A stretch of 64,000 bases of DNA from Lepidodermella squamata (taxonomy: Eukaryota > Animalia > Gastrotricha). The translations under genes were made by a program, and so were the position numbers. Below are positions 14,994 to 48,740 of this stretch, in pieces; the first letter of the stretch is position 1; each line of letters begins with the position of its first letter. The DNA lies in contig JBLDXI010000004.1 in NCBI GenBank assembly GCA_047495785.1, positions 2,790,001 to 2,854,000 on the forward strand. Direction: 5' to 3'. The notes beneath the pieces were generated by a model. It saw only the letters and a list, made by a program, of their open reading frames with translations. It had not been told where the DNA came from and did no database searches.

Positions 14994-15300
14994 TTACCTG
15001 CAGCAGTGATCGAACTGTTCGTTTGAGATTGCGTTAGGATTAGGCTGACAACCTCGTTCATCCGGCTTGGCGAAACCTAGATCGTCAATTTTATTCTTCA
15101 AAGTCCACTCGACGAAGTTACGTGGGGAAAGGCCAAGGGCGCTGTGGAAAAACTTTGAACACACGCGAATGTTGCCGGCCGAAGCCTTGTTCGAAAACGC
15201 GCCATCGAGGTGAAAAGTGTGGTGTTTCGAAGGACCACGTCGAGGCAGTGTGCGAAGTAGGATCCCCGAGCTGAGATGTTTTCTAGCAAGCTTCCAGCAC
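14994..15300 (-). pseudogene. DNA-transposase fragment, possibly a Sola-type N-terminal region
   Basis: RVCSKFFHSALGLS..FV..TLK......G....DERGCQPNPN resembles the VCxxFFxxTLxIS...DxRGxH motif I associate with Sola-like transposases. Isolated fragment, recognised from memory only. Confidence 0.4.
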
Positions 15301-19900: not shown

Positions 19901-20347
19901 AATATCGTTCGTATGACATTTCGGCCCACGACTTTCTGGCCACGACTTTTCAGTCCCGTCAATAGAGCCGGAAGACAATTCAGCCCGCGCGGCATGAGAG
20001 CCCACATTTAAATAAAAAAGAGCGACATTTTATCCGCGAAACTTTGGCGAGCGACGTTTCAGCCCAAAATATTCATTTCAAAGACGACATTTTAGCCTGC
20101 GAAAATTCAACCGTAACTTTTTTCCGCAGCAAATATCTTTTTTTCGCAGTAAATATCTTTTTTTCGCAGTAAAATATTTTTCCCGCAGGAAAGGCTTTTT
20201 TCCGCAGGAAATCGACTTTTTCTCGCAGTATAATTTTAAATAACGCAAATTGTCTTGCAAATTTCACCAAAAGATTTCTAGTTCAAAATTGAGATGGAAA
20301 ATGTATCGTTGTTATGGGTCAAGGGTGACAGAGATTCAATCGAAATA

Positions 20348-20449
20348 TACGAAAAAGAGCTTATTTATTTCATAAATATGAAATAAATAAGCTCTTTTTC
20401 GTAAGAACTTTTAACTTGTTGTTTCAATATTGAAACAACAAGTTAAAAG
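20348..20449. repeat. Two adjacent perfect AT-rich palindromes
   Basis: 20348-20403 has 27-bp arms and an AA loop. 20408-20449 is a 42-bp loopless palindrome. Confidence 0.9.
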
Positions 20450-22814: not shown

Positions 22815-25800
22815 GGATGGTTGCGCACCAAAGGTCCCACAGGGACGGAGTCCCCAATAAGCGATGGAGTACGGCGCATCAGCTACTGCTGATGCGGAAG
22901 GGGTTATAGGAAATTTTGGGGAAACTCCTAGGGAAACTCCTGTGATAGCTGTAAAATTCCAAAAAATACCAAAAAATCGGCCATGTTTCAAAACCTCCAA
23001 TAACTTTTCTTCAAACATAGCGAACAAACTACTGATTTTTAAACAATTAAAAACGAAAAAATCGCTCTTCCGGTTACGCAATTGCGCAACTACCTTGACC
23101 TAACGGCGTAAGGTCACCGTAGCCGGTCGCCAGCACCGCGCGCTGTCGCGCGCGCACACGACCACACACGCGTAATCACCGGCGCTCATTATAACCGCGC
23201 GCACCTGTGGCTGCGCAACTGCGCCATTCTTTTTATTGTATCACCGTTAAAAACTTTTTATGAATTACCGGCTGCCTCCCTCCCCCGGGGGAGGGAGGCA
23301 TCAGCTATCTTTCTTAAAAAACATGATATTTAACTCCGGTTTGGAGGGTGGGGGAAATAAAAACCGGCCGACCTTATTTCATCAATAACTCCACCAAAAT
23401 AAATCCGATTTTGAAAATTTTTGCGGCATCCGGCAGCTGGTGCCCCGTTTTTCTAGATGGTTGCGCACCAAAGGTCCCACAGGGACGAAGTCCCCAATAA
23501 GCGACAGAGTACGGCGCATCAGCGACTGCTGATGCAGAAGGGGTTATGGCCGCTTTGGAATACCTTGCTAGGGAAATTCCTGTGATACATGTAGAAAATC
23601 TAAAAATACCGAAAAATCGGGCAGGCTTTCAAGTGGCGGGTAGAAACTTTCCAATTTTGCCGCATCAATTGCTGATTTTTAAAAAATTAAAAACGAAAAA
23701 ATCGCATTATTTATTACGCAATTGCGTAACTACCTTGACCTAACGGCGCTAGGTCACCGGAGCCGGTCGCCACTGCCGCGCGCTCTCGCGCGCGCACACG
23801 ACACCTCTTGCGTAATCACCGGCGCACTGCTATAACCGCGCGCACACAGTGGCAGCGCTAGGAGCGCAACAGGTAGTGGCGCTCGAAACTTTTTATTCGC
23901 CGTTAAAAACTTTTTATGAATTACCAGCTGCCTCCCTCCCCCGGGGGAGGGAGGCATCAGTTATCTTTCTTAAAGAACATGATATTTAACTCCGGTTTGG
24001 AGGGTGGGGGAAATAAAAAGAGGCCGATCTTATTTCATCTATAACTTCACCAAAAATAATCCGATTTTGAAAATTTTTGCGGCAACCGGCAGCTGGTGCC
24101 CCGTTTTTCTAGATGGTTGCGCACCAAAGGTCCCACAGGGACGGAGTCCCCAATACAAAATGCCGCATGGCGCTTTAGCTATCGCTGCCAAGCGTACGAG
24201 GTATATGGCGGTGCTGCATTTTTCGCGTAGGGAAACGAATATTTCAGTTATAAATATGAAAAAAATACTGAAAAATCGGCAAGCTTTTCAAGTCTCAGGT
24301 AAAAACTTTCCAGTATAATCGCAATAATTTCTGATTTTTAATGAATTAAAAACGAAAAAATCGCTTTATCGATGACGCAACAACTTGACCTAACGGCGCT
24401 AGGTCACCGGTGCCGTACGCCACCACCGCCGCGCGCGCGATGGTCGCGCGCGCACACGACACCTATTGCGTAATCACCGGCGCACTGCTATAACCGCGCG
24501 CACACAGTGGCAGCGCTAGGAGCGCAACAGGTAGTGGCGCTCGAAACTTTTTATTCGCCGTTAAAAACTTTTTATGAATTACCAGCTGCCTCCCTCCCCC
24601 GGGGGAGGGAGGCATCAGTTATCTTTCTTAAAGAACATGATATTTAACTCCGGTTTGGAGGGTGGGGGAAATAAAAAGAGGCCGATCTTATTTCATCTAT
24701 AACTTCACCAAAAATAATCCGATTTTGAAAATTTTTGCGGCAACCGGCAGCTGGTGCCCCGTTTTTCTAGATGGTTGCGCACCAAAGGTCCCACAGGGAC
24801 GGAGTCCCCAATAAGCGATGGAGTACGGCGCATCAGCTACTGCTGATGCGGAAGGGGTTATAGGAAATTTTGGGGAAACTCCTAGGGAAACTCCTGTGAT
24901 AGCTGTAAAATTCCAAAAAATACCAAAAAATCGGCCATGTTTCAAAACCTCCAATAACTTTTCTTCAAACATAGCGAACAAACTACTGATTTTTAAACAA
25001 TTAAAAACGAAAAAATCGCTCTTCCGGTTACGCAATTGCGCAACTACCTTGACCTAACGGCGTAAGGTCACCGTAGCCGGTCGCCAGCACCGCGCGCTGT
25101 CGCGCGCGCACACGACCACACACGCGTAATCACCGGCGCTCATTATAACCGCGCGCACCTGTGGCTGCGCAACTGCGCCATTCTTTTTATTGTATCACCG
25201 TTAAAAACTTTTTATGAATTACCGGCTGCCTCCCTCCCCCGGGGGAGGGAGGCATCAGCTATCTTTCTTAAAAAACATGATATTTAACTCCGGTTTGGAG
25301 GGTGGGGGAAATAAAAACCGGCCGACCTTATTTCATCAATAACTCCACCAAAATAAATCCGATTTTGAAAATTTTTGCGGCATCCGGCAGCTGGTGCCCC
25401 GTTTTTCTAGATGGTTGCGCACCAAAGGTCCCACTGGGACGGAGTCCCCAATACAAAATGCCGCATGGCGCTTTAGCTATCGCTGCCAAGCGTATGAGGT
25501 ATATGGCGGTGCTACATTTTTCGCATAGGGAAACGAATATTACAGTTACAAAAATTTTAAAAATACTGAAAAATCGGCGAGCTTTTCAAGTCTCATGTAA
25601 AAACTTTCCAGCATAATCGCCTGAATGACTGATTTTTAAAAAATTAAAAACCGAAAAATCGCATCATTGATTACGCAATTGCGTAACTACCTTGACCTAA
25701 CGGCGTGAGTTCATGCACACATCAGCGCGAACTGTAGGCTGCTGCCGGCGGTTACGAAAGTTACGTCATGTTACAGCACAGGAAATGTATGAAAACGCGG

Positions 25801-25850
25801 CACAATCAATTTGATTCCATTTTGCCTCCCTCCCCGGGGGGAGGGAGGCT
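22815..25850 (+). repeat. Tandem array of a ~650-bp unit (~4.7 copies), each with a GC palindrome
   Basis: GATGGTTGCGCACCAAAGGTCCCAC recurs at ~22816, 23456, 24112, 24770 and 25410. TGCCTCCCTCCCCCGGGGGAGGGAGGCA occurs at 23273, 23929, 24587, 25227 and (variant) 25824. Confidence 0.95.
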
Positions 25851-25879
25851 TCAAGAATTTCACGTCTTGAATAATTAAC

Positions 25880-28800
25880 AATGGCGATAAATTCCGCATT
25901 CAACGGTGTAAAGCTCGTCTGTGAGCTATGCGCGCATCATGGTCAAAAATCGATAAAATCATTTGAAAAATGCAAATTACTCCAAAATGGTCGCTCGAGC
26001 GACCAATGGAAAAATCGACGCTCACAAAATTCCCGCAACCTGTATATAGGCTTGGCCTATACCGTTAGAAATGGCGATTGCTTGCGCACATTCTAAAATT
26101 AACGCGCTGGCAATAGGACACAGTGGAGTGACGCGCGGCGCTAAAAATCGTTTTACACAGTACTAATCAGCAACACAGTTTGCGCGCACACACCAAGTAC
26201 ACTTTGTAATTACCAGTGTAACCAATTTCTATTTTTTAATCACTGTCAGCAGGTACCAGTTTGGATGTTATACCTATTAAAACGAATGGCGATAAATTCC
26301 GCATTCAACGGTGTAAAGCTCGTCTGTGAGCTATGCGCGCATCATGGTCAAAAATCGATAAAATCATTTGAAAAATGCAAATTACTCCAAAATGGTCGCT
26401 CGAGCGACCAATGGAAAAATCGACGCTCACAAAATTCCCGCAACCTGTATATAGGCTTGGCCTATACCGTTAGAAATGGCGATTGCTTGCGCACATTCTA
26501 AAATTAACGCGCTGGCAATAGGACACAGTGGAGTGACGCGCGGCGCTAAAAATCGTTTTACACAGTACTAATCAGCAACACAGTTTGCGCGCACACACCA
26601 AGTACACTTTGTAATTACCAGTGTAACCAATTTCTATTTTTTAATCACTGTCAGCAGGTACCAGTTTGGATGTTATACCTATTAAAACGAATGGCGATAA
26701 ATTCCGCATTCAACGGTGTAAAGCTCGTCTGTGAGCTATGCGCGCATCATGGTCAAGAATCGATAAAATCATTTGAAAAATGCAAATTACTCCAAAATGG
26801 TCGCTCGAGCGACCAATGGAAAAATCGACGCTCACAAAATTCCCGCAACCTGTATATAGGCTTGGCCTATACCGTTAGAAATGGCGATTGCTTGCGCACA
26901 TTCTAAAATTAACGCGCTGGCAATAGGACACAGTGGAGTGACGCGCGGCGCTAAAAATCGTTTTACACAGTACTAATCAGCAACACAGTTTGCGCGCACA
27001 CACCAAGTACACTTTGTAATTACCAGTGTAACCAATTTCTATTTTTTAATCACTGTCAGCAGGTACCAGTTTGGATGTTATACCTATTAAAACGAATGGC
27101 GATAAATTCCGCATTCAACGGTGTAAAGCTCGTCTGTGAGCTATGCGCGCATCATGGTCAAGAATCGATAAAATCATTTGAAAAATGCAAATTACTCCAA
27201 AATGGTCGCTCGAGCGACCAATGGAAAAATCGACGCTCACAAAATTCCCGCAACCTGTATATAGGCTTGGCCTATACCGTTAGAAATGGCGATTGCTTGC
27301 GCACATTCTAAAATTAACGCGCTGGCAATAGGACACAGTGGAGTGACGCGCGGCGCTAAAAATCGTTTTACACAGTACTAATCAGCAACACAGTTTGCGC
27401 GCACACACCAAGTACACTTTGTAATTACCAGTGTAACCAATTTCTATTTTTTAATCACTGTCAGCAGGTACCAGTTTGGATGTTATACCTATTAAAACGA
27501 ATGGCGATAAATTCCGCATTCAACGGTGTAAAGCTCGTCTGTGAGCTATGCGCGCATCATGGTCAAAAATCGATAAAATCATTTGAAAAATGCAAATTAC
27601 TCCAAAATGGTCGCTCGAGCGACCAATGGAAAAATCGACGCTCACAAAATTCCCGCAACCTGTATATAGGCTTGGCCTATACCGTTAGAAATGGCGATTG
27701 CTTGCGCACATTCTAAAATTAACGCGCTGGCAATAGGACACAGTGGAGTGACGCGCGGCGCTAAAAATCGTTTTACACAGTACTAATCAGCAACACAGTT
27801 TGCGCGCACACACCAAGTACACTTTGTAATTACCAGTGTAACCAATTTCTATTTTTTAATCACTGTCAGCAGGTACCAGTTTGGATGTTATACCTATTAA
27901 AACGAATGGCGATAAATTCCGCATTCAACGGTGTAAAGCTCGTCTGTGAGCTATGCGCGCATCATGGTCAAAAATCGATAAAATCATTTGAAAAATGCAA
28001 ATTACTCCAAAATGGTCGCTCGAGCGACCAATGGAAAAATCGACGCTCACAAAATTCCCGCAACCTGTATATAGGCTTGGCCTATACCGTTAGAAATGGC
28101 GATTGCTTGCGCACATTCTAAAATTAACGCGCTGGCAATAGGACACAGTGGAGTGACGCGCGGCGCTAAAAATCGTTTTACACAGTACTAATCAGCAACA
28201 CAGTTTGCGCGCACACACCAAGTACACTTTGTAATTACCAGTGTAACCAATTTCTATTTTTTAATCACTGTCAGCAGGTACCAGTTTGGATGTTATACCT
28301 ATTAAAACGAATGGCGATAAATTCCGCATTCAACGGTGTAAAGCTCGTCTGTGAGCTATGCGCGCATCATGGTCAAAAATCGATAAAATCATTTGAAAAA
28401 TGCAAATTACTCCAAAATGGTCGCTCGAGCGACCAATGGAAAAATCGACGCTCACAAAATTCCCGCAACCTGTATATAGGCTTGGCCTATACCGTTAGAA
28501 ATGGCGATTGCTTGCGCACATTCTAAAATTAACGCGCTGGCAATAGGACACAGTGGAGTGACGCGCGGCGCTAAAAATCGTTTTACACAGTACTAATCAG
28601 CAACACAGTTTGCGCGCACACACCAAGTACACTTTGTAATTACCAGTGTAACCAATTTCTATTTTTTAATCACTGTCAGCAGGTACCAGTTTGGATGTTA
28701 TACCTATTAAAACGAATGGCGATAAATTCCGCATTCAACGGTGTAAAGCTCGTCTGTGAGCTATGCGCGCATCATGGTCAAAAATCGATAAAATCATTTG

Positions 28801-31800
28801 AAAAATGCAAATTACTCCAAAATGGTCGCTCGAGCGACCAATGGAAAAATCGACGCTCACAAAATTCCCGCAACCTGTATATAGGCTTGGCCTATACCGT
28901 TAGAAATGGCGATTGCTTGCGCACATTCTAAAATTAACGCGCTGGCAATAGGACACAGTGGAGTGACGCGCGGCGCTAAAAATCGTTTTACACAGTACTA
29001 ATCAGCAACACAGTTTGCGCGCACACACCAAGTACACTTTGTAATTACCAGTGTAACCAATTTCTATTTTTTAATCACTGTCAGCAGGTACCAGTTTGGA
29101 TGTTATACCTATTAAAACGAATGGCGATAAATTCCGCATTCAACGGTGTAAAGCTCGTCTGTGAGCTATGCGCGCATCATGGTCAAAAATCGATAAAATC
29201 ATTTGAAAAATGCAAATTACTCCAAAATGGTCGCTCGAGCGACCAATGGAAAAATCGACGCTCACAAAATTCCCGCAACCTGTATATAGGCTTGGCCTAT
29301 ACCGTTAGAAATGGCGATTGCTTGCGCACATTCTAAAATTAACGCGCTGGCAATAGGACACAGTGGAGTGACGCGCGGCGCTAAAAATCGTTTTACACAG
29401 TACTAATCAGCAACACAGTTTGCGCGCACACACCAAGTACACTTTGTAATTACCAGTGTAACCAATTTCTATTTTTTAATCACTGTCAGCAGGTACCAGT
29501 TTGGATGTTATACCTATTAAAACGAATGGCGATAAATTCCGCATTCAACGGTGTAAAGCTCGTCTGTGAGCTATGCGCGCATCATGGTCAAAAATCGATA
29601 AAATCATTTGAAAAATGCAAATTACTCCAAAATGGTCGCTCGAGCGACCAATGGAAAAATCGACGCTCACAAAATTCCCGCAACCTGTATATAGGCTTGG
29701 CCTATACCGTTAGAAATGGCGATTGCTTGCGCACATTCTAAAATTAACGCGCTGGCAATAGGACACAGTGGAGTGACGCGCGGCGCTAAAAATCGTTTTA
29801 CACAGTACTAATCAGCAACACAGTTTGCGCGCACACACCAAGTACACTTTGTAATTACCAGTGTAACCAATTTCTATTTTTTAATCACTGTCAGCAGGTA
29901 CCAGTTTGGATGTTATACCTATTAAAACGAATGGCGATAAATTCCGCATTCAACGGTGTAAAGCTCGTCTGTGAGCTATGCGCGCATCATGGTCAAGAAT
30001 CGATAAAATCATTTGAAAAATGCAAATTACTCCAAAATGGTCGCTCGAGCGACCAATGGAAAAATCGACGCTCACAAAATTCCCGCAACCTGTATATAGG
30101 CTTGGCCTATACCGTTAGAAATGGCGATTGCTTGCGCACATTCTAAAATTAACGCGCTGGCAATAGGACACAGTGGAGTGACGCGCGGCGCTAAAAATCG
30201 TTTTACACAGTACTAATCAGCAACACAGTTTGCGCGCACACACCAAGTACACTTTGTAATTACCAGTGTAACCAATTTCTATTTTTTAATCACTGTCAGC
30301 AGGTACCAGTTTGGATGTTATACCTATTAAAACGAATGGCGATAAATTCCGCATTCAACGGTGTAAAGCTCGTCTGTGAGCTATGCGCGCATCATGGTCA
30401 AAAATCGATAAAATCATTTGAAAAATGCAAATTACTCCAAAATGGTCGCTCGAGCGACCAATGGAAAAATCGACGCTCACAAAATTCCCGCAACCTGTAT
30501 ATAGGCTTGGCCTATACCGTTAGAAATGGCGATTGCTTGCGCACATTCTAAAATTAACGCGCTGGCAATAGGACACAGTGGAGTGACGCGCGGCGCTAAA
30601 AATCGTTTTACACAGTACTAATCAGCAACACAGTTTGCGCGCACACACCAAGTACACTTTGTAATTACCAGTGTAACCAATTTCTATTTTTTAATCACTG
30701 TCAGCAGGTACCAGTTTGGATGTTATACCTATTAAAACGAATGGCGATAAATTCCGCATTCAACGGTGTAAAGCTCGTCTGTGAGCTATGCGCGCATCAT
30801 GGTCAAAAATCGATAAAATCATTTGAAAAATGCAAATTACTCCAAAATGGTCGCTCGAGCGACCAATGGAAAAATCGACGCTCACAAAATTCCCGCAACC
30901 TGTATATAGGCTTGGCCTATACCGTTAGAAATGGCGATTGCTTGCGCACATTCTAAAATTAACGCGCTGGCAATAGGACACAGTGGAGTGACGCGCGGCG
31001 CTAAAAATCGTTTTACACAGTACTAATCAGCAACACAGTTTGCGCGCACACACCAAGTACACTTTGTAATTACCAGTGTAACCAATTTCTATTTTTTAAT
31101 CACTGTCAGCAGGTACCAGTTTGGATGTTATACCTATTAAAACGAATGGCGATAAATTCCGCATTCAACGGTGTAAAGCTCGTCTGTGAGCTATGCGCGC
31201 ATCATGGTCAAGAATCGATAAAATCATTTGAAAAATGCAAATTACTCCAAAATGGTCGCTCGAGCGACCAATGGAAAAATCGACGCTCACAAAATTCCCG
31301 CAACCTGTATATAGGCTTGGCCTATACCGTTAGAAATGGCGATTGCTTGCGCACATTCTAAAATTAACGCGCTGGCAATAGGACACAGTGGAGTGACGCG
31401 CGGCGCTAAAAATCGTTTTACACAGTACTAATCAGCAACACAGTTTGCGCGCACACACCAAGTACACTTTGTAATTACCAGTGTAACCAATTTCTATTTT
31501 TTAATCACTGTCAGCAGGTACCAGTTTGGATGTTATACCTATTAAAACGAATGGCGATAAATTCCGCATTCAACGGTGTAAAGCTCGTCTGTGAGCTATG
31601 CGCGCATCATGGTCAAAAATCGATAAAATCATTTGAAAAATGCAAATTACTCCAAAATGGTCGCTCGAGCGACCAATGGAAAAATCGACGCTCACAAAAT
31701 TCCCGCAACCTGTATATAGGCTTGGCCTATACCGTTAGAAATGGCGATTGCTTGCGCACATTCTAAAATTAACGCGCTGGCAATAGGACACAGTGGAGTG

Positions 31801-34800
31801 ACGCGCGGCGCTAAAAATCGTTTTACACAGTACTAATCAGCAACACAGTTTGCGCGCACACACCAAGTACACTTTGTAATTACCAGTGTAACCAATTTCT
31901 ATTTTTTAATCACTGTCAGCAGGTACCAGTTTGGATGTTATACCTATTAAAACGAATGGCGATAAATTCCGCATTCAACGGTGTAAAGCTCGTCTGTGAG
32001 CTATGCGCGCATCATGGTCAAGAATCGATAAAATCATTTGAAAAATGCAAATTACTCCAAAATGGTCGCTCGAGCGACCAATGGAAAAATCGACGCTCAC
32101 AAAATTCCCGCAACCTGTATATAGGCTTGGCCTATACCGTTAGAAATGGCGATTGCTTGCGCACATTCTAAAATTAACGCGCTGGCAATAGGACACAGTG
32201 GAGTGACGCGCGGCGCTAAAAATCGTTTTACACAGTACTAATCAGCAACACAGTTTGCGCGCACACACCAAGTACACTTTGTAATTACCAGTGTAACCAA
32301 TTTCTATTTTTTAATCACTGTCAGCAGGTACCAGTTTGGATGTTATACCTATTAAAACGAATGGCGATAAATTCCGCATTCAACGGTGTAAAGCTCGTCT
32401 GTGAGCTATGCGCGCATCATGGTCAAAAATCGATAAAATCATTTGAAAAATGCAAATTACTCCAAAATGGTCGCTCGAGCGACCAATGGAAAAATCGACG
32501 CTCACAAAATTCCCGCAACCTGTATATAGGCTTGGCCTATACCGTTAGAAATGGCGATTGCTTGCGCACATTCTAAAATTAACGCGCTGGCAATAGGACA
32601 CAGTGGAGTGACGCGCGGCGCTAAAAATCGTTTTACACAGTACTAATCAGCAACACAGTTTGCGCGCACACACCAAGTACACTTTGTAATTACCAGTGTA
32701 ACCAATTTCTATTTTTTAATCACTGTCAGCAGGTACCAGTTTGGATGTTATACCTATTAAAACGAATGGCGATAAATTCCGCATTCAACGGTGTAAAGCT
32801 CGTCTGTGAGCTATGCGCGCATCATGGTCAAAAATCGATAAAATCATTTGAAAAATGCAAATTACTCCAAAATGGTCGCTCGAGCGACCAATGGAAAAAT
32901 CGACGCTCACAAAATTCCCGCAACCTGTATATAGGCTTGGCCTATACCGTTAGAAATGGCGATTGCTTGCGCACATTCTAAAATTAACGCGCTGGCAATA
33001 GGACACAGTGGAGTGACGCGCGGCGCTAAAAATCGTTTTACACAGTACTAATCAGCAACACAGTTTGCGCGCACACACCAAGTACACTTTGTAATTACCA
33101 GTGTAACCAATTTCTATTTTTTAATCACTGTCAGCAGGTACCAGTTTGGATGTTATACCTATTAAAACGAATGGCGATAAATTCCGCATTCAACGGTGTA
33201 AAGCTCGTCTGTGAGCTATGCGCGCATCATGGTCAAAAATCGATAAAATCATTTGAAAAATGCAAATTACTCCAAAATGGTCGCTCGAGCGACCAATGGA
33301 AAAATCGACGCTCACAAAATTCCCGCAACCTGTATATAGGCTTGGCCTATACCGTTAGAAATGGCGATTGCTTGCGCACATTCTAAAATTAACGCGCTGG
33401 CAATAGGACACAGTGGAGTGACGCGCGGCGCTAAAAATCGTTTTACACAGTACTAATCAGCAACACAGTTTGCGCGCACACACCAAGTACACTTTGTAAT
33501 TACCAGTGTAACCAATTTCTATTTTTTAATCACTGTCAGCAGGTACCAGTTTGGATGTTATACCTATTAAAACGAATGGCGATAAATTCCGCATTCAACG
33601 GTGTAAAGCTCGTCTGTGAGCTATGCGCGCATCATGGTCAAGAATCGATAAAATCATTTGAAAAATGCAAATTACTCCAAAATGGTCGCTCGAGCGACCA
33701 ATGGAAAAATCGACGCTCACAAAATTCCCGCAACCTGTATATAGGCTTGGCCTATACCGTTAGAAATGGCGATTGCTTGCGCACATTCTAAAATTAACGC
33801 GCTGGCAATAGGACACAGTGGAGTGACGCGCGGCGCTAAAAATCGTTTTACACAGTACTAATCAGCAACACAGTTTGCGCGCACACACCAAGTACACTTT
33901 GTAATTACCAGTGTAACCAATTTCTATTTTTTAATCACTGTCAGCAGGTACCAGTTTGGATGTTATACCTATTAAAACGAATGGCGATAAATTCCGCATT
34001 CAACGGTGTAAAGCTCGTCTGTGAGCTATGCGCGCATCATGGTCAAAAATCGATAAAATCATTTGAAAAATGCAAATTACTCCAAAATGGTCGCTCGAGC
34101 GACCAATGGAAAAATCGACGCTCACAAAATTCCCGCAACCTGTATATAGGCTTGGCCTATACCGTTAGAAATGGCGATTGCTTGCGCACATTCTAAAATT
34201 AACGCGCTGGCAATAGGACACAGTGGAGTGACGCGCGGCGCTAAAAATCGTTTTACACAGTACTAATCAGCAACACAGTTTGCGCGCACACACCAAGTAC
34301 ACTTTGTAATTACCAGTGTAACCAATTTCTATTTTTTAATCACTGTCAGCAGGTACCAGTTTGGATGTTATACCTATTAAAACGAATGGCGATAAATTCC
34401 GCATTCAACGGTGTAAAGCTCGTCTGTGAGCTATGCGCGCATCATGGTCAAAAATCGATAAAATCATTTGAAAAATGCAAATTACTCCAAAATGGTCGCT
34501 CGAGCGACCAATGGAAAAATCGACGCTCACAAAATTCCCGCAACCTGTATATAGGCTTGGCCTATACCGTTAGAAATGGCGATTGCTTGCGCACATTCTA
34601 AAATTAACGCGCTGGCAATAGGACACAGTGGAGTGACGCGCGGCGCTAAAAATCGTTTTACACAGTACTAATCAGCAACACAGTTTGCGCGCACACACCA
34701 AGTACACTTTGTAATTACCAGTGTAACCAATTTCTATTTTTTAATCACTGTCAGCAGGTACCAGTTTGGATGTTATACCTATTAAAACGAATGGCGATAA

Positions 34801-37800: not shown

Positions 37801-38423
37801 CCTATACCGTTAGAAATGGCGATTGCTTGCGCACATTCTAAAATTAACGCGCTGGCAATAGGACACAGTGGAGTGACGCGCGGCGCTAAAAATCGTTTTA
37901 CACAGTACTAATCAGCAACACAGTTTGCGCGCACACACCAAGTACACTTTGTAATTACCAGTGTAACCAATTTCTATTTTTTAATCACTGTCAGCAGGTA
38001 CCAGTTTGGATGTTATACCTATTAAAACGAATGGCGATAAATTCCGCATTCAACGGTGTAAAGCTCGTCTGTGAGCTATGCGCGCATCATGGTCAAAAAT
38101 CGATAAAATCATTTGAAAAATGCAAATTACTCCAAAATGGTCGCTCGAGCGACCAATGGAAAAATCGACGCTCACAAAATTCCCGCAACCTGTATATAGG
38201 CTTGGCCTATACCGTTAGAAATGGCGATTGCTTGCGCACATTCTAAAATTAACGCGCTGGCAATAGGACACAGTGGAGTGACGCGCGGCGCTAAAAATCG
38301 TTTTACACAGTACTAATCAGCAACACAGTTTGCGCGCACACACCAAGTACACTTTGTAATTACCAGTGTAACCAATTTCTATTTTTTAATCACTGTCAGC
38401 AGGTACCAGTTTGGATGTTATAC
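25880..38423 (+). repeat. 405-bp tandem array, ~31 near-identical copies
   Basis: Exact 405-bp periodicity of the ORF track from 26265 to 38010. The only variant I noticed is one A/G site. Confidence 0.98.
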
Positions 38424-38798
38424 ATATTGCTACGTGAAACGTGAAATGTGAGATACAACGGTGCCAAAGGTGTTATGCACACATGTCATCCGACCACGTC
38501 TCGCTCAGTGGATGATTTGTAGTCGTCTGCGTCATCATGGCGTGCCGCGTTTCGGCTCAGCTACGTCTGATTAGCAATAGCAACGGTCTGCAGCCGCACG
38601 GCTGCGCAATCGACGACGTCACTGTAACGGTCGTCGAGCCTACACTGTCGTATTCTACATCGAACTACTTTATCGAGTTTGGAACAATTCGGATGCGTAT
38701 TTTTGTCATTTTTTGATACCTGTTTCTTGAAATATTTGCTTGTTATTAGAATCCTTTTCCATTTCATCACTTTAATTTTGTTTTGCTATCTGTTTCTC

Positions 38799-39942
38799 AT
38801 GGCAAAGCCGGAAGAGTACGTTTTATTGTTGGCCCATCAATAATTGGAAATAACTTTTTTGCGTTGCAGTTACTCGTTGGTTGGCATGTATCTTAAAACA
38901 AACAAACTCGCCCGCGCCTCTGAAGAAGTCAATATCGAAGCACGCCGCATAAGTCTCGATTCCGTTCCGTCAGAGCCTATCGATGGGCAGCGTATCGAGG
39001 GCATTCTTCTGTTTTCAAAGCGGCGCAGTGCAGATCAAAGCCGAGCAAAAGCAATCCCGAACAGTCCGAACATAAAGTCCAAAGTTGAAGGTGCCTACTT
39101 GAGGTTCATGGTTTTCGGGTAAGTGAATGATGAAACGATATGCTATTCCTTATATTTTCGCCCTTTATCCTAGATGTGTCGATGAAAGCGACGAAGCATT
39201 TGTTGTCGTCGTGAAGGACACACCGGCTGGTCGTCTAGCGCTGTCGTTCGGCGATCAAATAACACCTGGGGCTCGGCTGTCAATTAGCAACCCCGTATCC
39301 GTGAGCCAGTGGAAAACGATGAAGGTAATTGGCACTGATTGCCTTGTTCCTGCGGTGTCGCCCGTCCCCAGGAGCGTTGTCGAGCTCCCGTTCGAAGGCA
39401 TCCCTCTTGCTGAGCGATTTCACGCCTTTCGAGCAGACATCGATGTATTGGAGGTCATGGAGGTGGCTTTTTGCACTGCATGCGGCCGAAGCTGTGATGG
39501 CAGGTATGGCACCTGTTGCAGTTGTGTCGGCGGTTTTCGCTTTGTCACCATTAAAACGCTGCCTGGCATTCGCGTGAAAGCGGCGGCTTTTCGTGGTCTC
39601 AGCGCTGCTGTCTACTATTCTGTAGAACTTGCCCGCCGCTTGGTCCCCGAGCAAGTGCTTCAAGGCGACTGCGACTACGGCATCGTGACTCGCCACATTC
39701 GCCGGTCGATCGAGGCGCACCGCGGCGGTTTTCGAGCTATTTTCTGGGCGAAACCGGCAAAAGCACCGGATTCTGATGTACCGTCGTTTCATCGGATCCA
39801 CATCGCACGCCTCATTCCTTTGGGTGACCCCCTCCCGATGCTAGCGATTGCTGATGCCGTTGTGCCACCAGTGCCGGTACAGGGTGGCAATGTTGTCGAA
39901 AATTTGAACGGCGATCAACCGCCAGCTGCTACAGACAATTGA
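38799..39942 (+). CDS. Putative ssDNA-binding OB-fold protein with a Cys-rich Zn ribbon (RPA70C-like layout), 3 exons, ~344 aa
   Basis: Exons 38799-38815, 38870-39118 and 39174-39942 splice in frame. Beta-rich segments, CTACGRSCDG..TCCSC, and a terminal GGFRAIFWAKP...HIARLIP strand. The fold assignment is inference. Confidence 0.5.
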
Positions 39943-40276
39943 TATTCTGAGTATGTTAACGACTGAACCGTTACTAGTTTACTAAATAGTCATTTACGCC
40001 GAACTAGGCCACTGACTGCGTGTTGTCGTTGTTTCTTGTTATTTATGTGTGTGCGTGGTGTATAATATTGTTTGCACTACTTCGTAGTTATTGTATACAT
40101 TTATGATGACAATAAAACATTTGGTATTTATTTGGCTATCAGTGAAGTTTATTTCTCGGCATTAACAAACGGAGCAAGAAGAATCAACAACAAGTAGCCA
40201 GTAACAACAAAACAAACGGCGGAAGCAATCAATCGATAGGCAGGAGAGTATGAGACAGGCGAGAGTGAGAGTAAGA

Positions 40277-40726
40277 TTAGAGCGAATCGTAGAAGTCCGG
40301 GTTCAAATCCATGACCTCCACGAGCTGGGATTTTAGTTTGTAGAGCTTGCTTATTGGGAATGACAGGTTTAAAAATTTGGGGAATTCTTTATACTCCTGA
40401 TAGGTCAGGAGCATCGTCATACACCACGTCTTGCCCCAACCATGCTTGAGGCTTATCTTCGCCAAAAATGCGCTCTGAGAGTCTGCCGATTCCCTTCTTA
40501 ACATATCAATCGCTTGGCCGACGGCGAAGGCCTGATGGAGCTTCACCGACGCCATCGACTCCAGAACATGCTTTCCCTGGTGAACGTATTTTATGGCCTC
40601 ATCGATTGAGCATTCGGGTACGAAGTCATCCATGGTCGCGTCGTCAGGGTGCGTGCCTACATAAAGTTTCCTAACGGCCTTTTCGACTTGCTCAGGCGTC
40701 TTGAGTGAGTGCTCGATGCCACTGAT
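40277..40726 (-). CDS. Terminal exon of a small alpha-helical protein of unknown function (5' exons apparently lost)
   Basis: Acceptor tttgattctttAG at 40727, then 149 open codons: ISGIEHSLK...FAVGQAIDMLRRE...FLAKISLKHGWGKTWCMTMLLTYQEYKEFPKF. Convergent poly(A)-like signals near 40110-40150. Confidence 0.6.
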   Translation of the reverse strand: MSGIEHSLKTPEQVEKAVRKLYVGTHPDDATMDDFVPECSIDEAIKYVHQGKHVLESMASVKLHQAFAVGQAIDMLRRESADSQSAFLAKISLKHGWGKTWCMTMLLTYQEYKEFPKFLNLSFPISKLYKLKSQLVEVMDLNPDFYDSL

Positions 40727-40770
40727 CTAAAGAATCAAATACTAAAATACGCCAATTATAAGCCAAAGAA

Positions 40771-43700
40771 ATGCATATAGTCACCCGACACGTATGTTCC
40801 AATGCTGGAGAGAGATGCCTCAAGCAACGCGGTGAAAACGGGGAAGAAATGTGCCGTGTTCGAGCTCATCCATGCTGTGAGGACTACTTTTATGAAGAAA
40901 AGGAGAAGTTATACGAAGAGGAAGTTTATGAGAAACTCGAATTAGCCGGGCTTGCTGAACGTGTTGCAGTTGGTGAAAACGGCGATAAGAAGTGGCGAAT
41001 CAAGTATGACAAACTGAGAGCTGGCGTCCATCATTACCCTCTTCGTCGATTCGAATGTGGTGTCAAAATGTTGCCTACTATTCCCTTATTTGCTGTTATG
41101 CTACGCTGCTCGTCTAATATACAAAGATGCGATGCAAGATTCATGGTGAGCTACCTCGTTAAGTATTGTGCCGGCAAAGAAGTGCGATACAAGCCGCCGA
41201 TAAAGAACACAAAAAATCCCGAAGAAATCGTATTCGATAAATCGACAGGGAATCTTCCTAATTTGAAAATTTCCGGAGTTGCTATAAACGAACAAAAGCG
41301 ACAAGTGAAATCGAAGCAAAAGCATCAGTCTAGCATCATGGAGGTAGCCGCAACAGAAATGCACTGGGTGGTCTGCGAATTCCCCTATACGTATACAAAT
41401 GTCGTGCACGTTCATTTGAACACTCAGCCACCAGAACACCGCCTCAACTACAAATCTCAAGTGAAGCGTGGGCCTTTAAAACCAGGTTAAAATGAATCAT
41501 ATTGACCTAGCCATAATATTTTCGGTTTTCATCATAGGTGTCAATCCCGTTCCAAACGACCCAAACGCATCAAGATACCACCTTAACCAACCTTGGCGCT
41601 TGTTCACTCGTGAGCAGATTCAACTGGCCCTTGAGTACATTGATACCAAAATACAACCCGGAGCAACGGAACGATGGAATATCCGGCCGCCGGAGTCGAT
41701 GATCTTTTCGAACCCTGAAATATTTCATCAAGTCTTTATAGCTTCAAAAGAAAAACAAGCGAATGACATCAGTGTCGAGGTTCACAACTCACCAATTCGA
41801 GACGCTTTGAATCGTGACTATAAAATCCGAGACTGCAGTTTGCAAGTTGGTCTTCGTTTTTTGGAAAGTCAGCCCGAGGATCATCCAGCACGCTCGGCTT
41901 TAATCTACATTTTCAGGTCACTAATACGTGGAGACGAAGATCTAGCAGATCGTTACCTCCATCGGTCAGGCTATGTTCGCGCGATAACAGTTCCATCCAC
42001 GATAACACCCTTCAATCGGCAGAAATTCTTGTATCACGCAATCATGACGCTAGGAAGCATGGAGAATGAGATGCAGGCTTTTTCATCACCTGTTTTCGCA
42101 ATCAATTTCGCAAATGCTCATCTGGTCTCACCTCCAGAATTGTTCGACGGTGCATTGGTCCAGCCGGATCTACAGCGTGATGTAATTGTCATTTTCCGGA
42201 GATTAATAACTGAACAGATGGTTTGGCTGCCTGTTTCTGCTAAACGACTCGGAACTTACATTTTAAAAACTTGGGAGACTCTCCAAGACTATTTTTTCGG
42301 CTCGCATAGCAATGATCATGATGTACCTGCTGTTTCGGCCTACGCTTTGAAAAGCCAAGCTAACGGCAAAATTTGTGATGCGGAGAGAATCTTTAAAGAA
42401 AGTCTTGTTCAAACTTGCCATGCGCAACTCAGCAGCAAAGTCGCTCTGCCTTCTATTTCGGAACTGCTAAATGCGAAAATTGAGAGTCCTGCAATATGGA
42501 CGCCCTCCATCTGCGAACGCTCTGGTAATGAGTTAAATTACTTAATACTCCTTCTTATTATTTCTACTCCTATTTACAGGTCTGACCGAAGAGTGTATTG
42601 CACAACAAGAGATGGCACTCAAGCATGGCCAGCGTAAAATCGATTCATTACTTTGCCATCGCGATGGCTTCCGTCATACCGTCTACGTTGGTCCACCGGG
42701 AGCTGGCAAAACCTTTCTTGCCCAAATTGTGGCTCTCTACGCTATTTCAAAAGGCTTCAACGTCTGTTTAACGGCGCTGACATCGGAGAGAGCCCGGTAT
42801 CTTGGTGGGCGGCATCTTCATTTAATTTTCCCTTTGCGTGTCATGCAGTGCTCTTACACACATGCTATGCTGGAGGCACAAGAATGCATTCGCTCCCTTG
42901 GCCGAGATCCTTTGAAAGCTGAGCTTCTGTACCGCATCGACGTATTTATCATAGAAGAAATCGGTCTCATTTCCGCTGAAATGTTCGCGGCACTTGACGC
43001 CGTCTTGAAATACGTCATGGGGAACGATTTAAAGTTTGGGGGGAAAATGGTCATTGCTACTGGCGATCACGCACAGCTGCAGCCAGTTCTCGGAAGACCA
43101 TTCTGGCTATCCACTCACCTGCTATTCAGCTTCGATGTTGTCGTACTTACTCACTACGTGAGGTCGGCGGAAGATTCTCAACTTCAAGAGATACTACATC
43201 TACTGCGCTTGCCGATTCTCAACGAAAGTCAACGACAATGGGTCACATCCATCATCATGAACAGGGCACAGTTCTTTTCATCCTGGGAAAACGTTCCTGA
43301 CGGATTGATGCGTATAGTTACAACGCGCGGGGCCCAAAAAGCAGTCATACGACAGTATCTCCAAAAAAAAGAGTCACAAGTTCACATGGTCAAATGCGTC
43401 GCTGTCGATGAGTTCCAGCGTGCAGCCGACGATTGGAAACCTACGACGAATAAAGCTCACGTAAACAAACTTGACAACGTGTGCTTGGAACCTCAAGAAC
43501 TGTTCTTATTCGTCGGAGAATATGTCTGCATGACATATAATAACGTCGTTGACGATCCAGCTTCTTCGTTTTCGCAAGGTCAACTCGCCATTATAGTCAG
43601 TATGCCGACTGATATTTCTCATTGCAAGGCCAAAGTAACAGTTCGCCTCGTACCCCCAGGCATTCGACCTACTGAACATGTTGCCGACGAATGGCCATTG

Positions 43701-44584
43701 GTAGATATTCCTCGACATCGCGGTATCTCGGTCATTATTGGCCCTGATGCAACGCGTGCGCGGCGCGTACAGTTCCCGTTTCGCTACTATGTTTGTTCAA
43801 CGGTTCACAGGATAATGGGCTCAACTTTGGAAGAAGGCGTTGCTATACAAATTTCGGATGTCGACCGAAATTTCAGAATGTGGGAAAAGGCGCAGTTCTT
43901 GGTGATGGTCTCCAGATGCAGGAACCTAAGTCGTGTCGCCTTCGTTACATCTAGCAAGGCTGCAACCGCTCGCGCAATTGACGGCATTTTGATGAAGGAG
44001 AGCCCGTACGACAAGGCTATCATCAACCGACTGCAGCAATTGAGCGTGCTAACTGCTGAGCAGCCTACCGTGGATATCGACGCGCCGGCTTTTTACATAA
44101 CGAATTCCATCTCGCCTACAGTAGAAAACGGCGTTGTCTACCATATTATCTCCCAAACACGCCCGTTTGTTTCCTATGTAGGCGAGACGATGTTCAGCGC
44201 CGAGAAACGTCTCCGAGAGCACAACGGCGGTATGACATCTATATGTTCAACTTGAATTTTTAATTCCATGCTTTTATTTCAGGCTGTGGTGCTGACTTCA
44301 CTCGCGGAGACACCTGGCTGCTGTATGGAATTATTCACGGTTTCGAAAATGCTGCGGATCGTAAAAAATTTGAAACCAGGGTTCACAGAAAGCTAGAATC
44401 GACTTTTTTTCCGTGGCACGTTCGAGCAGCTGTAACCGAGCTGGTGGCATCAATAAATGTTCATTGCCCAGCCAATCAGCAGTTGGCTATCGTTCAGTTC
44501 GGGAGATTGGACGAGCAGCGCGTTAGGCAACTCACCAATGCACGGATTCCTACGAGGCCGACAACCTTCGTCAAAGAAGATTAA
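40771..44584 (+). CDS. Rep-motif-3 / Pif1-RecD-type SF1B helicase / GIY-YIG nuclease fusion (4 exons, ~1217 aa)
   Basis: Exons 40771-41485, 41538-42524, 42580-44229 and 44283-44584 splice in frame. Motifs: PTIPLF..MLRCSSNIQRC....VSYLVKYCAGKE; GPPGAGKT; IIEEIG; GDHAQLQPV; RRVQFP..STVHRIMGSTL; VMVSR; VYHIISQ..VSYVGET..EKRLREHNGGCGADFT..TWLLYGIIHGF..RKKFE. Confidence 0.85.
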
Positions 44585-44749
44585 CATCAGCAAAATAACG
44601 CTTTCCTTCGTTTTTTTGTTACATCCCGGGCTGATGTGATCGCGAGCGACCTTAAGCAGATTGAGAATCCACGCAATGCCGCTTCATTTTATATATTCGT
44701 TCGCAATAAAACGTACATTTTTTATTGGAAAATATTCCAGATACTGTCG

Positions 44750-45965
44750 AGGGTGGGGCGAATAAATAAAACAATTCATTTATAGCTTCACTAAAAATAA
44801 TCCGAATTTGAAAATTTTTGCGGCAACCGGCAGCTGGTGCCCCGTTTTTCTAGATGGTTGCGCACCAAAGGTCCCACAGGGACGGAGTCCCCAATACAAA
44901 ATGCCGCATGGCGCTTTAGCTATCGCTGCCAAGCGTATGAGGTATATGGCGGTGCTGCATTTTTCGCGTAGGGAAACGAATATTTCAGTTATAAATATGA
45001 AAAAAATACTGAAAAATCGGCGAGCCTTTTAAGTCTCAGGTAAAAACTTTCCAGCATAATCGCAATTATTCCTGATTTTTAATAAATTAAAAACGAAAAA
45101 ATCGCTTTATCGATGACGCAACAACTTGACCTAACGGCGCTAGGTCACCGGTGCCGTACGCCACCACCGCCGCGCGCGCGACGGTCGCGCGCGCACACGA
45201 CACCTATTGCGTAATCGCCGGCGCACTGCTATAACCGCGCGCACACAGTGGCAGCGCTAGGAGCGCAACAGGTAGTGGCGCTCGAAACTTTTTATATGCC
45301 GTTAAAAACTTTTTATGAATTACCGGCCGCCTCCCTCCCCCGGGGGAGGGAGGCATCAATTATCTTTCTTGAAAAACGTGACATTCAACCCCGGTTTGGA
45401 GGGTGGGGGAAATAAAAACCGGCCGATCTTATTTCATCTATAACTTCACCAAAAATAATCCGATTTTGAAAATTTTTGCGGCAACCGGCAGCTGGTGCCC
45501 CGTTTTTCTAGATGATTGCGCGAACCAACCCGATAGGGTTCCCCTAGCGGCGGAGCCGCAGCCTGAACCGGAGGTCCAGCGCCTCTCTCTCAACTTCGCC
45601 GGTCGAGGCGACAATGGTAGAGGCGTTTTGCGCTGGACGAAAAACGAACCTAGGGAAACGAATTTTAACGATAAAAATATGGAAAAATAAGTCGTAGATA
45701 GATCTTGTTTTGAAGTTATGGGAAAAGTCTTTTTAGCCAATTTCACCGATCGGCTGATTTTTGGCGATTTTTTATTCATAAAAAAATGGAGAACTCCTCA
45801 TTAATATTCATGAGCTGCTTACGCCGCCGTCTGGGTCACGGTTACCGGCACCCTCATGACCGAGGTTAATTACCTCACACGCGAGAGCCGGGTCGTTGCG
45901 ATGCGCCACTTCGAAATGTCAATATAAAACCAGTTTGGCGGCCCTCCCTGGGGGGAGGGCTGCAT
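44750..45965 (+). repeat. Second block of the ~650-bp palindrome repeat, same orientation as 22815-25850
   Basis: 44850-45510 is nearly identical to 24110-24770. Palindrome at 45329-45354, with a degenerate copy near 45940-45963. Confidence 0.9.
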
Positions 45966-46086
45966 CAGTGACATTCTACAAAACATTCTGCATCGAACGG
46001 TCTAAATTTTGGTGCTAGGCGATAAACGGTTGATTTTATATCGAATTTACAAGTTGCGCACACTTGAAAAAATGGCCCTCGCTGAC

Positions 46087-48740
46087 GGTGTGTGAAATTT
46101 TCAGTGCGCGGATGACACCCAGATAGGTGCGGAATTTGTCGTGACAAAGTCGGATTTTTAGATACTAGAAAAGACGGCCGATTTTTTGGTACCAAAACCG
46201 CCGCGAGATTCGCAAGATTTCCTCTGAATATAGCGTTTGGCGCGCGACTGATTTTTAGTTAAAATTAAAATTTGAATTTTTTCGAGTTTCGTCAATTTTT
46301 TTGACACCTCACCCGGGTAGCGGTCATGTTTAATTGCACGTAGAATGTAGCAAATTTTGCGCTGAATTTTTATAGACCAACCGCACTATCGTAGCCCTTA
46401 TGGTTTTGGAGCTATAGGAGGCGCGGTAAATCGCGTTTTTAAGCCTATTTTTAGTGCGCGGCGGCGCTCACACACTCACTGAGAGTCGGTTTCTGTCAAA
46501 TTTTGGACACATGCAGCAGTTCTGTGCGCATATCCAAATAACACTGGTCGACGTAGAATTTCAAGACGAATCGAACAAGCCTAAGATCATCGTCGTAGCC
46601 CTCATAGTTTTTTGCCTATAGGAGGCGCGGTCGATCCACCTTAAAATTTCGAAATTTCGTTGTTTTTGTGAATTTTTTCGCGACGGTTTGGAAGAGACCC
46701 GGTGTAACATAACAACCATTTCTAGTACAAAATTTGACGGGCTTTCGAGAGATGAAAACCGCATGCCAACACCTATCACAGTTTTTTCCCAATAAGCCGA
46801 GCGGTAAAATATGAGATAAAAAACAGAATTGGTAAATCTCGAAATTTCGCTTCTACAAATCCAGGTCATATTTACCCGCAACTTCAGTGACGAATAATCA
46901 TGAGATAGAGGTAACTTGAGACGCTATATTGAATGGTAGACGCCACATGTTCACAGGGCACGCCCATTTGACGAACCGCCCTTGACAAAGTCAAATTTTT
47001 TTAAATTGTCGACTTACTTTACACTCTCATTTCAGTGGTATGGCTGGTTCGCGCTAATACCTTTATGATGCCAACGCTTAGAGCAAAGTCCGCTGGCCAT
47101 TTTGAGACCAGGCTGGTCGTTATACCCGGTGTGTGAAATTTTCAGGGCGCGTGTGACACCCTGATAGGTGCGGAATCTGTCTTGACAAAGTCGGTATTTT
47201 AGATACTAGAAAACACGGCCGATTTTTTGGTACCAGAACCGCCGGGAGATTCGCAAGATTTCCTTTGACTATAGCAGTTTGCGCGCGATGTATTTTTAGT
47301 GAAAATCAAATTTTATATTTTTTCGAGTTTCGCCAATTGTTTTGACATCTCACCCTGGTAGCGCTCATGTTTGAATACACCTAGAATGTAGGAAATTTTG
47401 CGCTGAATTTTTAGAGCCCAACCGCATAATCGTAGCGCTTATGGTTGTCGAGCAATAGAAGGCGCGGCAAATCGCGTTTTCAACCAATTTTTAGTGTGCG
47501 GCGGCGCTCACACACTCACTCAGAGCCGTTTTCTGTTAAATTTTCGACACGCGTAGCAGTTTTGTGCGCACATAGACATTATATAGGCCGACGTAGAATT
47601 TCAAGACGAATCGAACGACACTAGGCCCATCGTCGTAGCCCTTATAGTTTTTTGTCTATAGAAGGCGCGGCCGATCCACCTTAAAATTTCGAAATTTCGA
47701 CGTTTTTGAGAATCATTTCACGAGGATTAGGAATAGTCTCGGTTTAATAAAATAACCATGTCAAGTACAGAATATGACGGGCTTTCGAGAGATGAAAACC
47801 GCATGCCAACACCTTTCACAGTTTTTTGCCAATAGGCCACGCGGTATAATATGAGATAAAAAACAAACTGAGTAAATTTTCTAATTTCGATTATTTAATT
47901 CTGGGTGTAATTTAACTGCGAATTCAATTACGAATATTCATGAGAAATAGGTAACTCAAGGCGAGCCTTCAACTGGTCCACGCCCCACATTCACAGGACG
48001 CACCCATTTGACGCCACACCATTTGTCAAGTCAAATTTTCATAATTTTGTTGACCAACTTTGCACTCGCATTTTTTCTTTCACCGAAGTTGCGCTGATAT
48101 ATTAATGATTCAAACGCGTGGAGCATATTCAGCTAAGAATTTTGAGACCAGGCTGGTCGTTGTAGCCGCCGTAGTGATGGTGTTTTTCGCTGCGCGGTAA
48201 AACTTGGTTGTCCATATTTTTAGTGTGCGCACTCACGCAGTTAGGCTTACTCATTGCATTTTTGAGTGGTATGCAATATTTGTGCGCAAAGTTAGTTGCA
48301 ACCATCATGTGCAGAAAAATGCGAGGAATCGAACAATCCTACGCCCATCGTCGTAGCCCTCATAGTATTCTGCCTATGAGCAGGCGCGGTATAATTTGTT
48401 TCGACCCACCGTAAAACTTTCGAATTTCAATGTTTTTGTGAGTTTTTTCGCGACGGTGTAGAAGCGTCCCGGCGTAATATAATAGCCATGTCTACTACAA
48501 CATTTTGCGTGCTATTTTATGGTGAAAACCGCATGTCAATACCCCTCATGGTTTTTTGCCAATAAGGCACGCGGTATAATTTGAGATAAAAAACAGACCA
48601 AGTAAATTTTGAAATTTTGCTTCACCAATTCCGGGTCATTTTTATCTGGAATTGTATTGACGAATTTTCTTAACAAATAGATAACTCGAGGCGGCCTATC
48701 GAATGGTATATGCCCCATGTTCATAGGCTGCACCATGTGG
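46087..48740 (+). repeat. Diverged ~1040-bp tandem repeat (two full units and a partial third)
   Basis: GGTGTGTGAAATTTTCAG.GCGCG at ~46087 and ~47128; TTTGAGACCAGGCTGGTCGTT at 47101 and 48141; internal sub-repeat ATCGTAGCCC..ATAG..GGCGCGG. Confidence 0.85.

Follow-up and report, generated by a model that had tools for sequence, protein, structure and literature searches.

A 64,000-nucleotide stretch of the genome of the gastrotrich Lepidodermella squamata (GenBank assembly GCA_047495785.1, contig JBLDXI010000004.1, positions 2,790,001 to 2,854,000 of the forward strand; hereafter the window, numbered from its first letter) contains a cassette of two genes, which lies together with a 12.5-kb satellite between direct repeats that carry palindromes. 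The region from 22815 to 48740 had been singled out in a first-pass annotation as a candidate giant rolling-circle element. Our analysis suggests that the locus is probably a copy of a Helitron-like rolling-circle transposon that is truncated at its 5' side and non-autonomous. In its lineage the Rep-helicase transposase (RepHel) ends in an SLX1-type GIY-YIG nuclease, and a second gene is usually present that encodes a beta-rich protein with a Cys cluster, possibly an OB-fold binder of single-stranded DNA (ssDNA). The locus is made up of the following features:

22813 to 25862, plus strand: left array A, about 4.6 head-to-tail units of ~650 bp each (self-BLAST, alignment and palindrome scan)
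25877 to 38428, plus strand: 405-bp satellite, 31.0 units (TRF and unit comparison)
38844 to 39942, plus strand: companion gene, a small upstream open reading frame (ORF) followed by a 271-aa ORF at 39127 to 39942
40762 to 44581, plus strand: 5'-truncated RepHel-GIY-YIG gene (Pfam, collinear tblastn, Rep alignment and GIY-YIG profile)
44750 to 45990, plus strand: right-hand copies of array A, one good unit and then a decayed second unit
46086 to 48734, no strand assigned: array B, 2.5 copies of a ~1041-bp unit at ~76 to 82% identity (self-BLAST)

The larger gene encodes a Cys-rich insert, the two-tyrosine motif of Rep, a linker, a PIF1-like helicase and an SLX1-type GIY-YIG domain, laid out in four successive open pieces with three frame changes and no internal stops over ~1250 codons. 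The pieces were searched singly. The helicase piece matched PIF1 in Pfam (E = 1.3e-14) and both Pif1 (1e-8) and Helraiser (1.3e-6) in the PDB, and it was 43% identical to its relative P0001 (E = 6e-131). When ten full-length relatives were compared with the window by tblastn, the Rep-motif piece, a piece previously described as a separate "helical protein" and the helicase piece were matched in collinear succession, and the gene as a whole corresponded to the C-terminal ~1200 residues of a family of 2200- to 2900-aa proteins. In the six relatives' loci that were fetched, the corresponding stretch is a single uninterrupted ORF of 2209 to 2814 codons. Since the three pieces align end to end with these uninterrupted ORFs, they form one gene, and the cassette holds two genes rather than the three of the first-pass annotation, which had set the "helical protein" apart from the Rep-motif-3 and helicase/GIY-YIG pieces. 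The Rep motif, helicase and GIY-YIG domain named in that annotation are all present. The two-tyrosine motif (Y-L-V-K-Y) aligned with a conserved motif in 8 of 8 relatives, and a GIY-YIG profile of the family matched the last two pieces at positions 2 to 41 and 38 to 81 of 97 (E = 2e-10 and 4.5e-6, respectively). This coverage fits the GIY-YIG nuclease superfamily (SLX1/UPF0213-like), in which the GIY...YIG motifs precede a region with conserved Arg, His/Asn and Glu. Both the Walker A motif of the helicase and the GIY-YIG motifs are intact.

The 5' part of the gene is missing. In the Rep alignment the first piece starts right behind the HUH motif and retains the Cys-rich insert and the tyrosine motif. 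A profile spanning Rep motif 1 to HUH, together with the N-terminal 440 to 1620 residues of eight relatives, found nothing in any frame of the window, including the DNA beyond the satellite, and Pfam detected no Helitron_like_N domain in the cassette. About 1100 N-terminal residues are lacking, among them the metal-binding half of the catalytic site. A protein without motif 1 and HUH cannot perform HUH chemistry, and because neither these motifs nor the N-terminal region occur anywhere in the window, the copy cannot be autonomous as it stands. The first-pass annotation had instead proposed that the whole 22.8- to 48.7-kb span is an intact, self-replicating element that brings its own ssDNA-binding protein and nuclease and amplifies its internal DNA. 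Cassette frames that stay open over ~1250 codons, a satellite uniform enough to be recent, and the recurrence of the companion gene and flanking arrays in relatives would all suit such an element. However, relatives keep the motif 1 and HUH that no frame of the window encodes, the nearest palindromes of intact relatives lie 12 to 16 kb apart and not 26 kb, and no ends could be defined. We consider an intact giant element very improbable: the lack of motif 1, HUH and the N-terminal residues does not bear out a self-replicating replicon, and nothing in the analysis shows the span 22815 to 48740 to be one mobile unit. As a truncated, non-autonomous copy, the element would be mobilisable only in trans, through an intact partner elsewhere in the genome.

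At each of the three frame changes the window carries roughly 50 nt of surplus DNA relative to the relatives, with essentially zero residues lost. Judged from the sequence, this pattern is plausibly that of short introns rather than of 1- to 2-nt frameshifts, and in the locus of Cyprideis torosa, the closest relative, surplus DNA is also found at the matching point within the GIY-YIG domain. The earlier description of the genes as intron containing is no more than plausible for this gene. The same features might be explained by a domesticated host gene, that is, a RepHel-derived helicase-nuclease that had lost HUH, gained short introns and been kept by selection, with the repeats around it incidental. 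Domestication would account for the absence of any stop over ~1250 codons despite the truncation, for extra DNA without missing residues at all three frame changes and at the same GIY-YIG point in the closest relative's locus, and for the preservation of the Walker A and GIY-YIG motifs. It would not account for the element-type palindrome repeats on its flanks or for the element's companion gene alongside. In addition, the nearest relative is just 43% identical, there is no sign of an orthologous host gene family, and the exact products are absent from the protein collection, in which exact look-ups of nine window ORFs found nothing. On balance, domestication appears improbable.

The relatives of the window gene define a large family. 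When all of 1.84 billion representatives were scanned with the helicase piece, 229 clusters were recovered at E < 1e-30, sharply separated; the clusters were counted at 50% identity, and 229 is a lower bound. The best matches are proteins of 1600 to 2800 aa that were matched at their C terminus by alignments reaching into the GIY-YIG motif. Among 14 full-length members, Pfam identified PIF1 in all 14, GIY-YIG in 13, a weak Helitron_like_N in 13, OTU in 2 and DUF6570 in none (E < 0.01). Exo_endo_phos was likewise found in none of the 14, its position being occupied by GIY-YIG, and neither Exo_endo_phos nor DUF6570 was detected by Pfam in the pieces of the window cassette. The GIY-YIG domain was present in 56 of the 59 top matches of at least 1500 aa. 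Comparison of the family profile with the PDB returned Pif1 (6e-23), Helraiser (2e-17, helicase only) and SLX1 (1e-9). Alignment of the relatives' Rep region revealed motif 1, the HUH motif, the Cys-rich insert and the two-tyrosine motif in common, and the family's motif 1 region was related by hhalign to that of a canonical Helitron in the window itself (E = 0.0014). Named members come from records of an ostracod (Cyprideis torosa), an amphipod (Hyalella azteca), a tunicate (Styela clava) and a hagfish (Myxine glutinosa), and further members lie on eukaryote-like contigs of up to 1.5 Mb. The lineage is widespread and apparently unnamed. In the C. torosa locus (L001, contig CAJPEW010001241.1) we also observed, at about 3900 to 16100, many short tandem arrays with an AGCAATT-rich motif, located upstream of the annotated gene and within its long "introns."

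The second gene of the cassette recurs with the transposase gene. Its 271-aa ORF contains a conserved Cys cluster, C-x3-4-CDG-x6-8-C-x-C, and by itself gave no match in Pfam or the PDB and no database homologue. Relatives surfaced only when the loci of the RepHel relatives were searched by tblastn, with a pairwise E value of 7e-14 to an ORF at 20683 to 21336 on the minus strand of L002, 3.3 kb from the RepHel-GIY gene; one further protein also matched. A profile built from these three sequences detected companion ORFs beside the RepHel-GIY genes of L009 (E = 5e-10), L010 (9e-9), L005 (2e-7) and L007 (6e-6). The companion gene therefore adjoins RepHel-GIY in 6 of 9 independent loci, or in 5 of 8 when the window is set aside, in agreement with the earlier annotation of a second gene as part of the cassette. 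All seven companion sequences share an invariant C...CD...C pattern with four invariant Cys/Asp positions, and the small ORF upstream of the 271-aa ORF is weakly common to the relatives.

The companion had been annotated as an OB/Zn ssDNA-binding-like protein. A profile of the seven members still had no Pfam or PDB match, and the protein models reached pLDDT values of only 31 (single sequence) and 38. The top Foldseek matches were all OB folds (yeast and human RPA, including RPA70 C-terminal domains, RMI1/2, TPP1 and Stn1), at non-significant E values of 0.05 to 1 and from a low-confidence model. The OB-fold part of that annotation thus persists as a set of non-significant structural matches, and no match of significance supports it. 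At most, these matches hint that the beta-rich companion may be an OB-fold ssDNA binder, a plausible reading that agrees with the presence of RPA genes in Helitron-like elements. On the minus strand at 40277 to 40633, between the two genes of the cassette, lies a 118-aa ORF with no Pfam match and no counterpart in the relatives' loci.

The repeats described in the first-pass annotation, namely a palindrome-bearing direct repeat of ~650 bp on both sides, a 12.5-kb satellite and a third array of ~1 kb units, were all recovered by our analysis at the positions listed above. Each good unit of array A contains one perfect palindrome of 26 to 28 nt, TGCCTCCCTCCCCCGGGGGAGGGAGGCA, starting at 23273, 23929, 24587, 25227 and 45329. 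A palindrome scan placed the 28-nt copies of the left array at 23273-23300, 23929-23956, 24587-24614 and 25227-25254. The diverged, partial unit that terminates this array ends with a variant palindrome at 25824 to 25849, at the edge of the satellite, which is followed by a second short hairpin. On the right, the good unit (44775 to 45521) is 96% identical to the third left-hand unit (24034 to 24780) by self-BLAST and alignment, with its palindrome at 45329 to 45354; the decayed unit has a variant palindrome near 45943 to 45962. All copies, left and right of the cassette, are direct repeats of one another. The palindrome with 50 nt on either side is the best conserved part of the unit, with a conservation share of 0.95 to 0.99, compared with 0.71 to 0.85 in the variable part. 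Folding of the left-array palindrome regions as ssDNA (23230 to 23340 and 25790 to 25880) gave z values of about -4.2 against shuffled sequences; the fold of the right-hand region was less clear (z = -2.2).

The satellite between the left array and the genes is nearly uniform. Of its 31 units, 22 are identical and the others differ at 1 to 4 bases, and each includes an 18-nt palindrome, TGGTCGCTCGAGCGACCA. A search for similarity to the rest of the window found none. The satellite was also considered as a ribozyme-bearing retrozyme or a tRNA-derived repeat; no Rfam family reached its gathering score and no tRNA was found, and this candidate was rejected. Array B lacks palindromes with stems of at least 8 and resembles nothing elsewhere in the window. 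From its sequence, array B is only a candidate part of the element.

We analyzed the flanks of three intact relatives, L006, L009 and L010, which come from one sample and are about 72% identical to each other in coding DNA. The three share a 20-nt palindrome within a block of 55 to 66 nt that is 92 to 100% identical and occurs in a single orientation on both sides of the cassette. L006 has six copies of the block on either side, with a period of ~1280 bp upstream and ~1390 bp downstream; L009 has three upstream and four downstream copies, and L010 a single copy per side. Across the three loci, the distances between the nearest flanking palindromes are 12.0, 12.2 and 15.8 kb, and the interval contains the transposase gene together with the companion gene in L009 and L010. 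Tandem repeats also adjoin the RepHel-GIY gene in L002, L005 and L007. The flanking of the cassette by palindrome-bearing direct repeats, as annotated in the window, is thus found in diverged relatives as well, and palindrome bracketing appears to be a family trait. A second recurrent palindrome of 22 nt, CATCTCCC...GGGAGATG, was observed in L006 (638, 1943, 3223, 5780 and 7055) and L009 (4451); it occurs once per upstream unit of the relative's array, besides the main palindrome block.

These comparisons bear on whether the arrangement in the window reflects chance, with a dead RepHel-GIY fragment lying in repeat-rich, heterochromatin-like DNA and array A, the satellite and array B being unrelated satellites that expanded around it. 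The window is indeed packed with other transposons (ORFs with Helitron_like_N and PIF1, an ORF with reverse transcriptase and AP endonuclease domains, and a MULE transposase), the satellite and array B are similar to nothing else in the window or in the relatives, and the 28-nt palindrome was not found when metagenome contigs were scanned for it. A chance neighborhood is nevertheless difficult to reconcile with a single type of array A unit that brackets the cassette with left and right copies 96% identical, with palindrome-block repeats that bracket the homologous cassette in L006, L009 and L010, and with the tandem repeats beside the gene in L002, L005 and L007. We regard it as unlikely.

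If the locus is a truncated copy of a rolling-circle transposon, its repeats can be accommodated in a simple scheme. The palindrome block is conserved far better than the genes, which suggests that it may be a cis-acting end or an origin-like signal recognized by Rep. Tandem arrays of palindrome units might then arise when rolling-circle copying runs past one such signal after another or starts anew at them. The 405-bp satellite would represent a very recent internal tandem amplification, akin to the central repeats of Helentron-type non-autonomous elements. By analogy, the GIY-YIG domain would take the nicking role that is assumed for the AP endonuclease in Helentrons.

Several observations weigh against the interpretation as a Helitron-like copy. 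The single copy compared from the source genome does not define an element end, a target site or an empty site. The palindrome pattern of the relatives derives from one sample, and their palindrome differs in sequence from that of the window. The flanking repeats are direct, unlike the short inverted termini described for Helentron/Helitron2, and neither array B nor the satellite has anything in common with the relatives. The companion gene is upstream of RepHel and on the same strand in the window but downstream, on either strand, in the relatives. Finally, since the DNA of the window is rich in transposable elements, with a Helitron, a LINE and a MULE nearby, some of the juxtaposition is possibly accidental.

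The surrounding DNA of the window is eukaryote-like and transposon rich, with a G+C content of about 43%, and nothing in the region resembles a virus of animals, people or crops. On the minus strand, 4323 to 11555 holds the RepHel of a canonical Helitron in three separate ORFs (Helitron_like_N, 1e-51; PIF1, 1e-67; Pif1_2B, 2e-19), and nested in this span, as one insertion, is an 888-aa LINE-type ORF with Exo_endo_phos and RVT_1 domains. The minus strand from 20411 to 22857 holds a MULE-type transposase ORF (MULE, 2e-11) with two further ORFs upstream of it, and a 20-bp tandem repeat lies at 20114 to 20234. The last of the upstream ORFs extends over the initial 45 bp of array A, and the MULE element may therefore be abutted or cut by the array; a partner terminal repeat of this MULE, which would bear on insertion of the array complex into it, was sought and none was found in the window. 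An uninterrupted 844-aa ORF at 58782 to 61316 on the plus strand had no Pfam or PDB match, and several further ORFs outside the cassette had no Pfam matches. At 3505 to 4104, 600 bp are 87% identical to their own reverse complement, representing a large palindrome or two inverted copies. Two inverted repeat pairs, at 13676-13796/14033-14153 (97.5%) and 885-998/3166-3281 (93%), are possible terminal inverted repeats of elements of ~480 bp and ~2.4 kb, respectively.

To our knowledge, Helitron-like elements (HLEs) are now sorted into Helitron (HLE1) and Helentron/Helitron2 (HLE2), and the AP endonuclease is the only recognized fused nuclease. The boldest reading is that the RepHel-GIY-YIG elements form a distinct, unnamed Helitron-like clade across aquatic animals, which we judge slightly less likely than not. 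Its hallmarks would be the SLX1-type GIY-YIG transposase, a Cys-cluster companion (possibly an OB fold) without described relatives, and palindrome-block ends multiplied into head-to-tail arrays, and its members would be direct sources of satellite DNA through rolling-circle copying. A family that spans several animal phyla, comprises 229 or more clusters at the 50% identity level and has both GIY-YIG and its own companion protein would add a branch to the classification. It would also be the second case, independent of the first, in which a nicking enzyme has been recruited by a rolling-circle transposase, and would thereby bear on the function of that nuclease. The recurrent palindrome-block arrays would provide a concrete sequence-level system in which to follow the seeding of satellite DNA by rolling-circle elements. 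Itself a truncated example, the window copy is of value chiefly as a lead to this family.

Canonical Helitrons (HLE1) have 5'-TC and CTRR-3' ends, with a 3' hairpin ~11 nt from the end, and insert between A and T; Helentron/Helitron2 (HLE2) elements insert at TT. The present family resembles canonical Helitrons, including Helraiser (PDB 7LCC), in its homologous Rep motif 1 region, its weak Helitron_like_N match and its related helicase. It differs in the additional GIY-YIG domain and in its length of 2200 to 2900 aa. The helicase of the window gene is 29% identical over 135 aa to that of the window's own minus-strand Helitron, and its Rep piece has no detectable similarity to that Helitron. 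No 5'-TC/CTRR-3' ends were recognized at the locus, where no scan for CTRR was made; the hairpins seen are the 26- to 28-nt palindromes inside the 650-bp direct repeats.

The closest likeness in plan is to the Helentron or HLE2 group (Poulter et al. 2003; Thomas et al. 2014, PMC4067079; HELIANO, PMC11417382). In Helentrons the RepHel carries an endonuclease at its C terminus and is accompanied by OTU and RPA genes; palindromic subterminal repeats lie at either end, together with a 3' stem-loop, and tandem repeats occupy the centre (PMC4067079, PMC7492417, PMC11417382). They have also been reported to bear satellite-like repeats (PMC7492417). The present family likewise has a long RepHel (HUH Rep and Pif1-like helicase) with a C-terminal nuclease, OTU in some members, an accessory gene of possible ssDNA-binding type, a common palindrome on both sides of the genes and internal tandem repeats. 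Where Helentrons have an Exo_endo_phos AP endonuclease, it has a GIY-YIG nuclease of SLX1 type. The proposed HLE2 marker DUF6570 (PMC11417382) is present in 0 of 14 members, and the repeats are direct, 55 to 650 bp long and often in arrays, whereas those of Helentrons are subterminal inverted repeats of 12 to 15 bp. Of the Helentron end signals, the window shows a common palindrome on both sides and a short hairpin after the palindrome at 25824, but these lie inside long direct repeats. The distinct Helitron-like lineage proposed in the first-pass annotation therefore holds insofar as the family, with GIY-YIG in 13 of 14 members, differs from both canonical Helitrons and AP-endonuclease Helentrons; its parts list is nonetheless the described Helentron/HLE2 plan with the nuclease swapped.

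Other mobile elements share some features with the locus. HINE/DINE-1 and the oyster Helentron-derived elements also carry tandem repeats that are amplified along with a rolling-circle element, with hairpins near the ends (PMC4067079, PMC7492417), but they are short and noncoding, with dispersed copies; the array here is 12.5 kb long, nearly uniform and adjoins coding sequence. Penelope-like retroelements are likewise eukaryotic mobile elements with a GIY-YIG nuclease. In the cassette, no reverse transcriptase is linked, and the GIY-YIG domain is fused to Rep/helicase and is closest to SLX1/UPF0213. A Polinton/Tlr-like or Penelope-like element was rejected, as neither a polymerase nor an integrase is present and no reverse transcriptase is linked; the sole reverse transcriptase of the window is that of the LINE-type ORF, 30 kb from the cassette and on the opposite strand. 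In the literature that we found, GIY-YIG is linked to Helitron-like elements only once, in a sentence that notes a GIY-YIG domain in the Sphagnum magellanicum HLE2 family HelenSM92 and describes it as a capture in one plant family (PMC11417382). Compared on the basis of this published description, HelenSM92 resembles the present elements in that RepHel and a GIY-YIG domain are transposed together; it differs in being described from one plant family, whereas here the domain occurs in 13 of 14 full-length members and 56 of 59 long matches, in animals and on eukaryote-like contigs.

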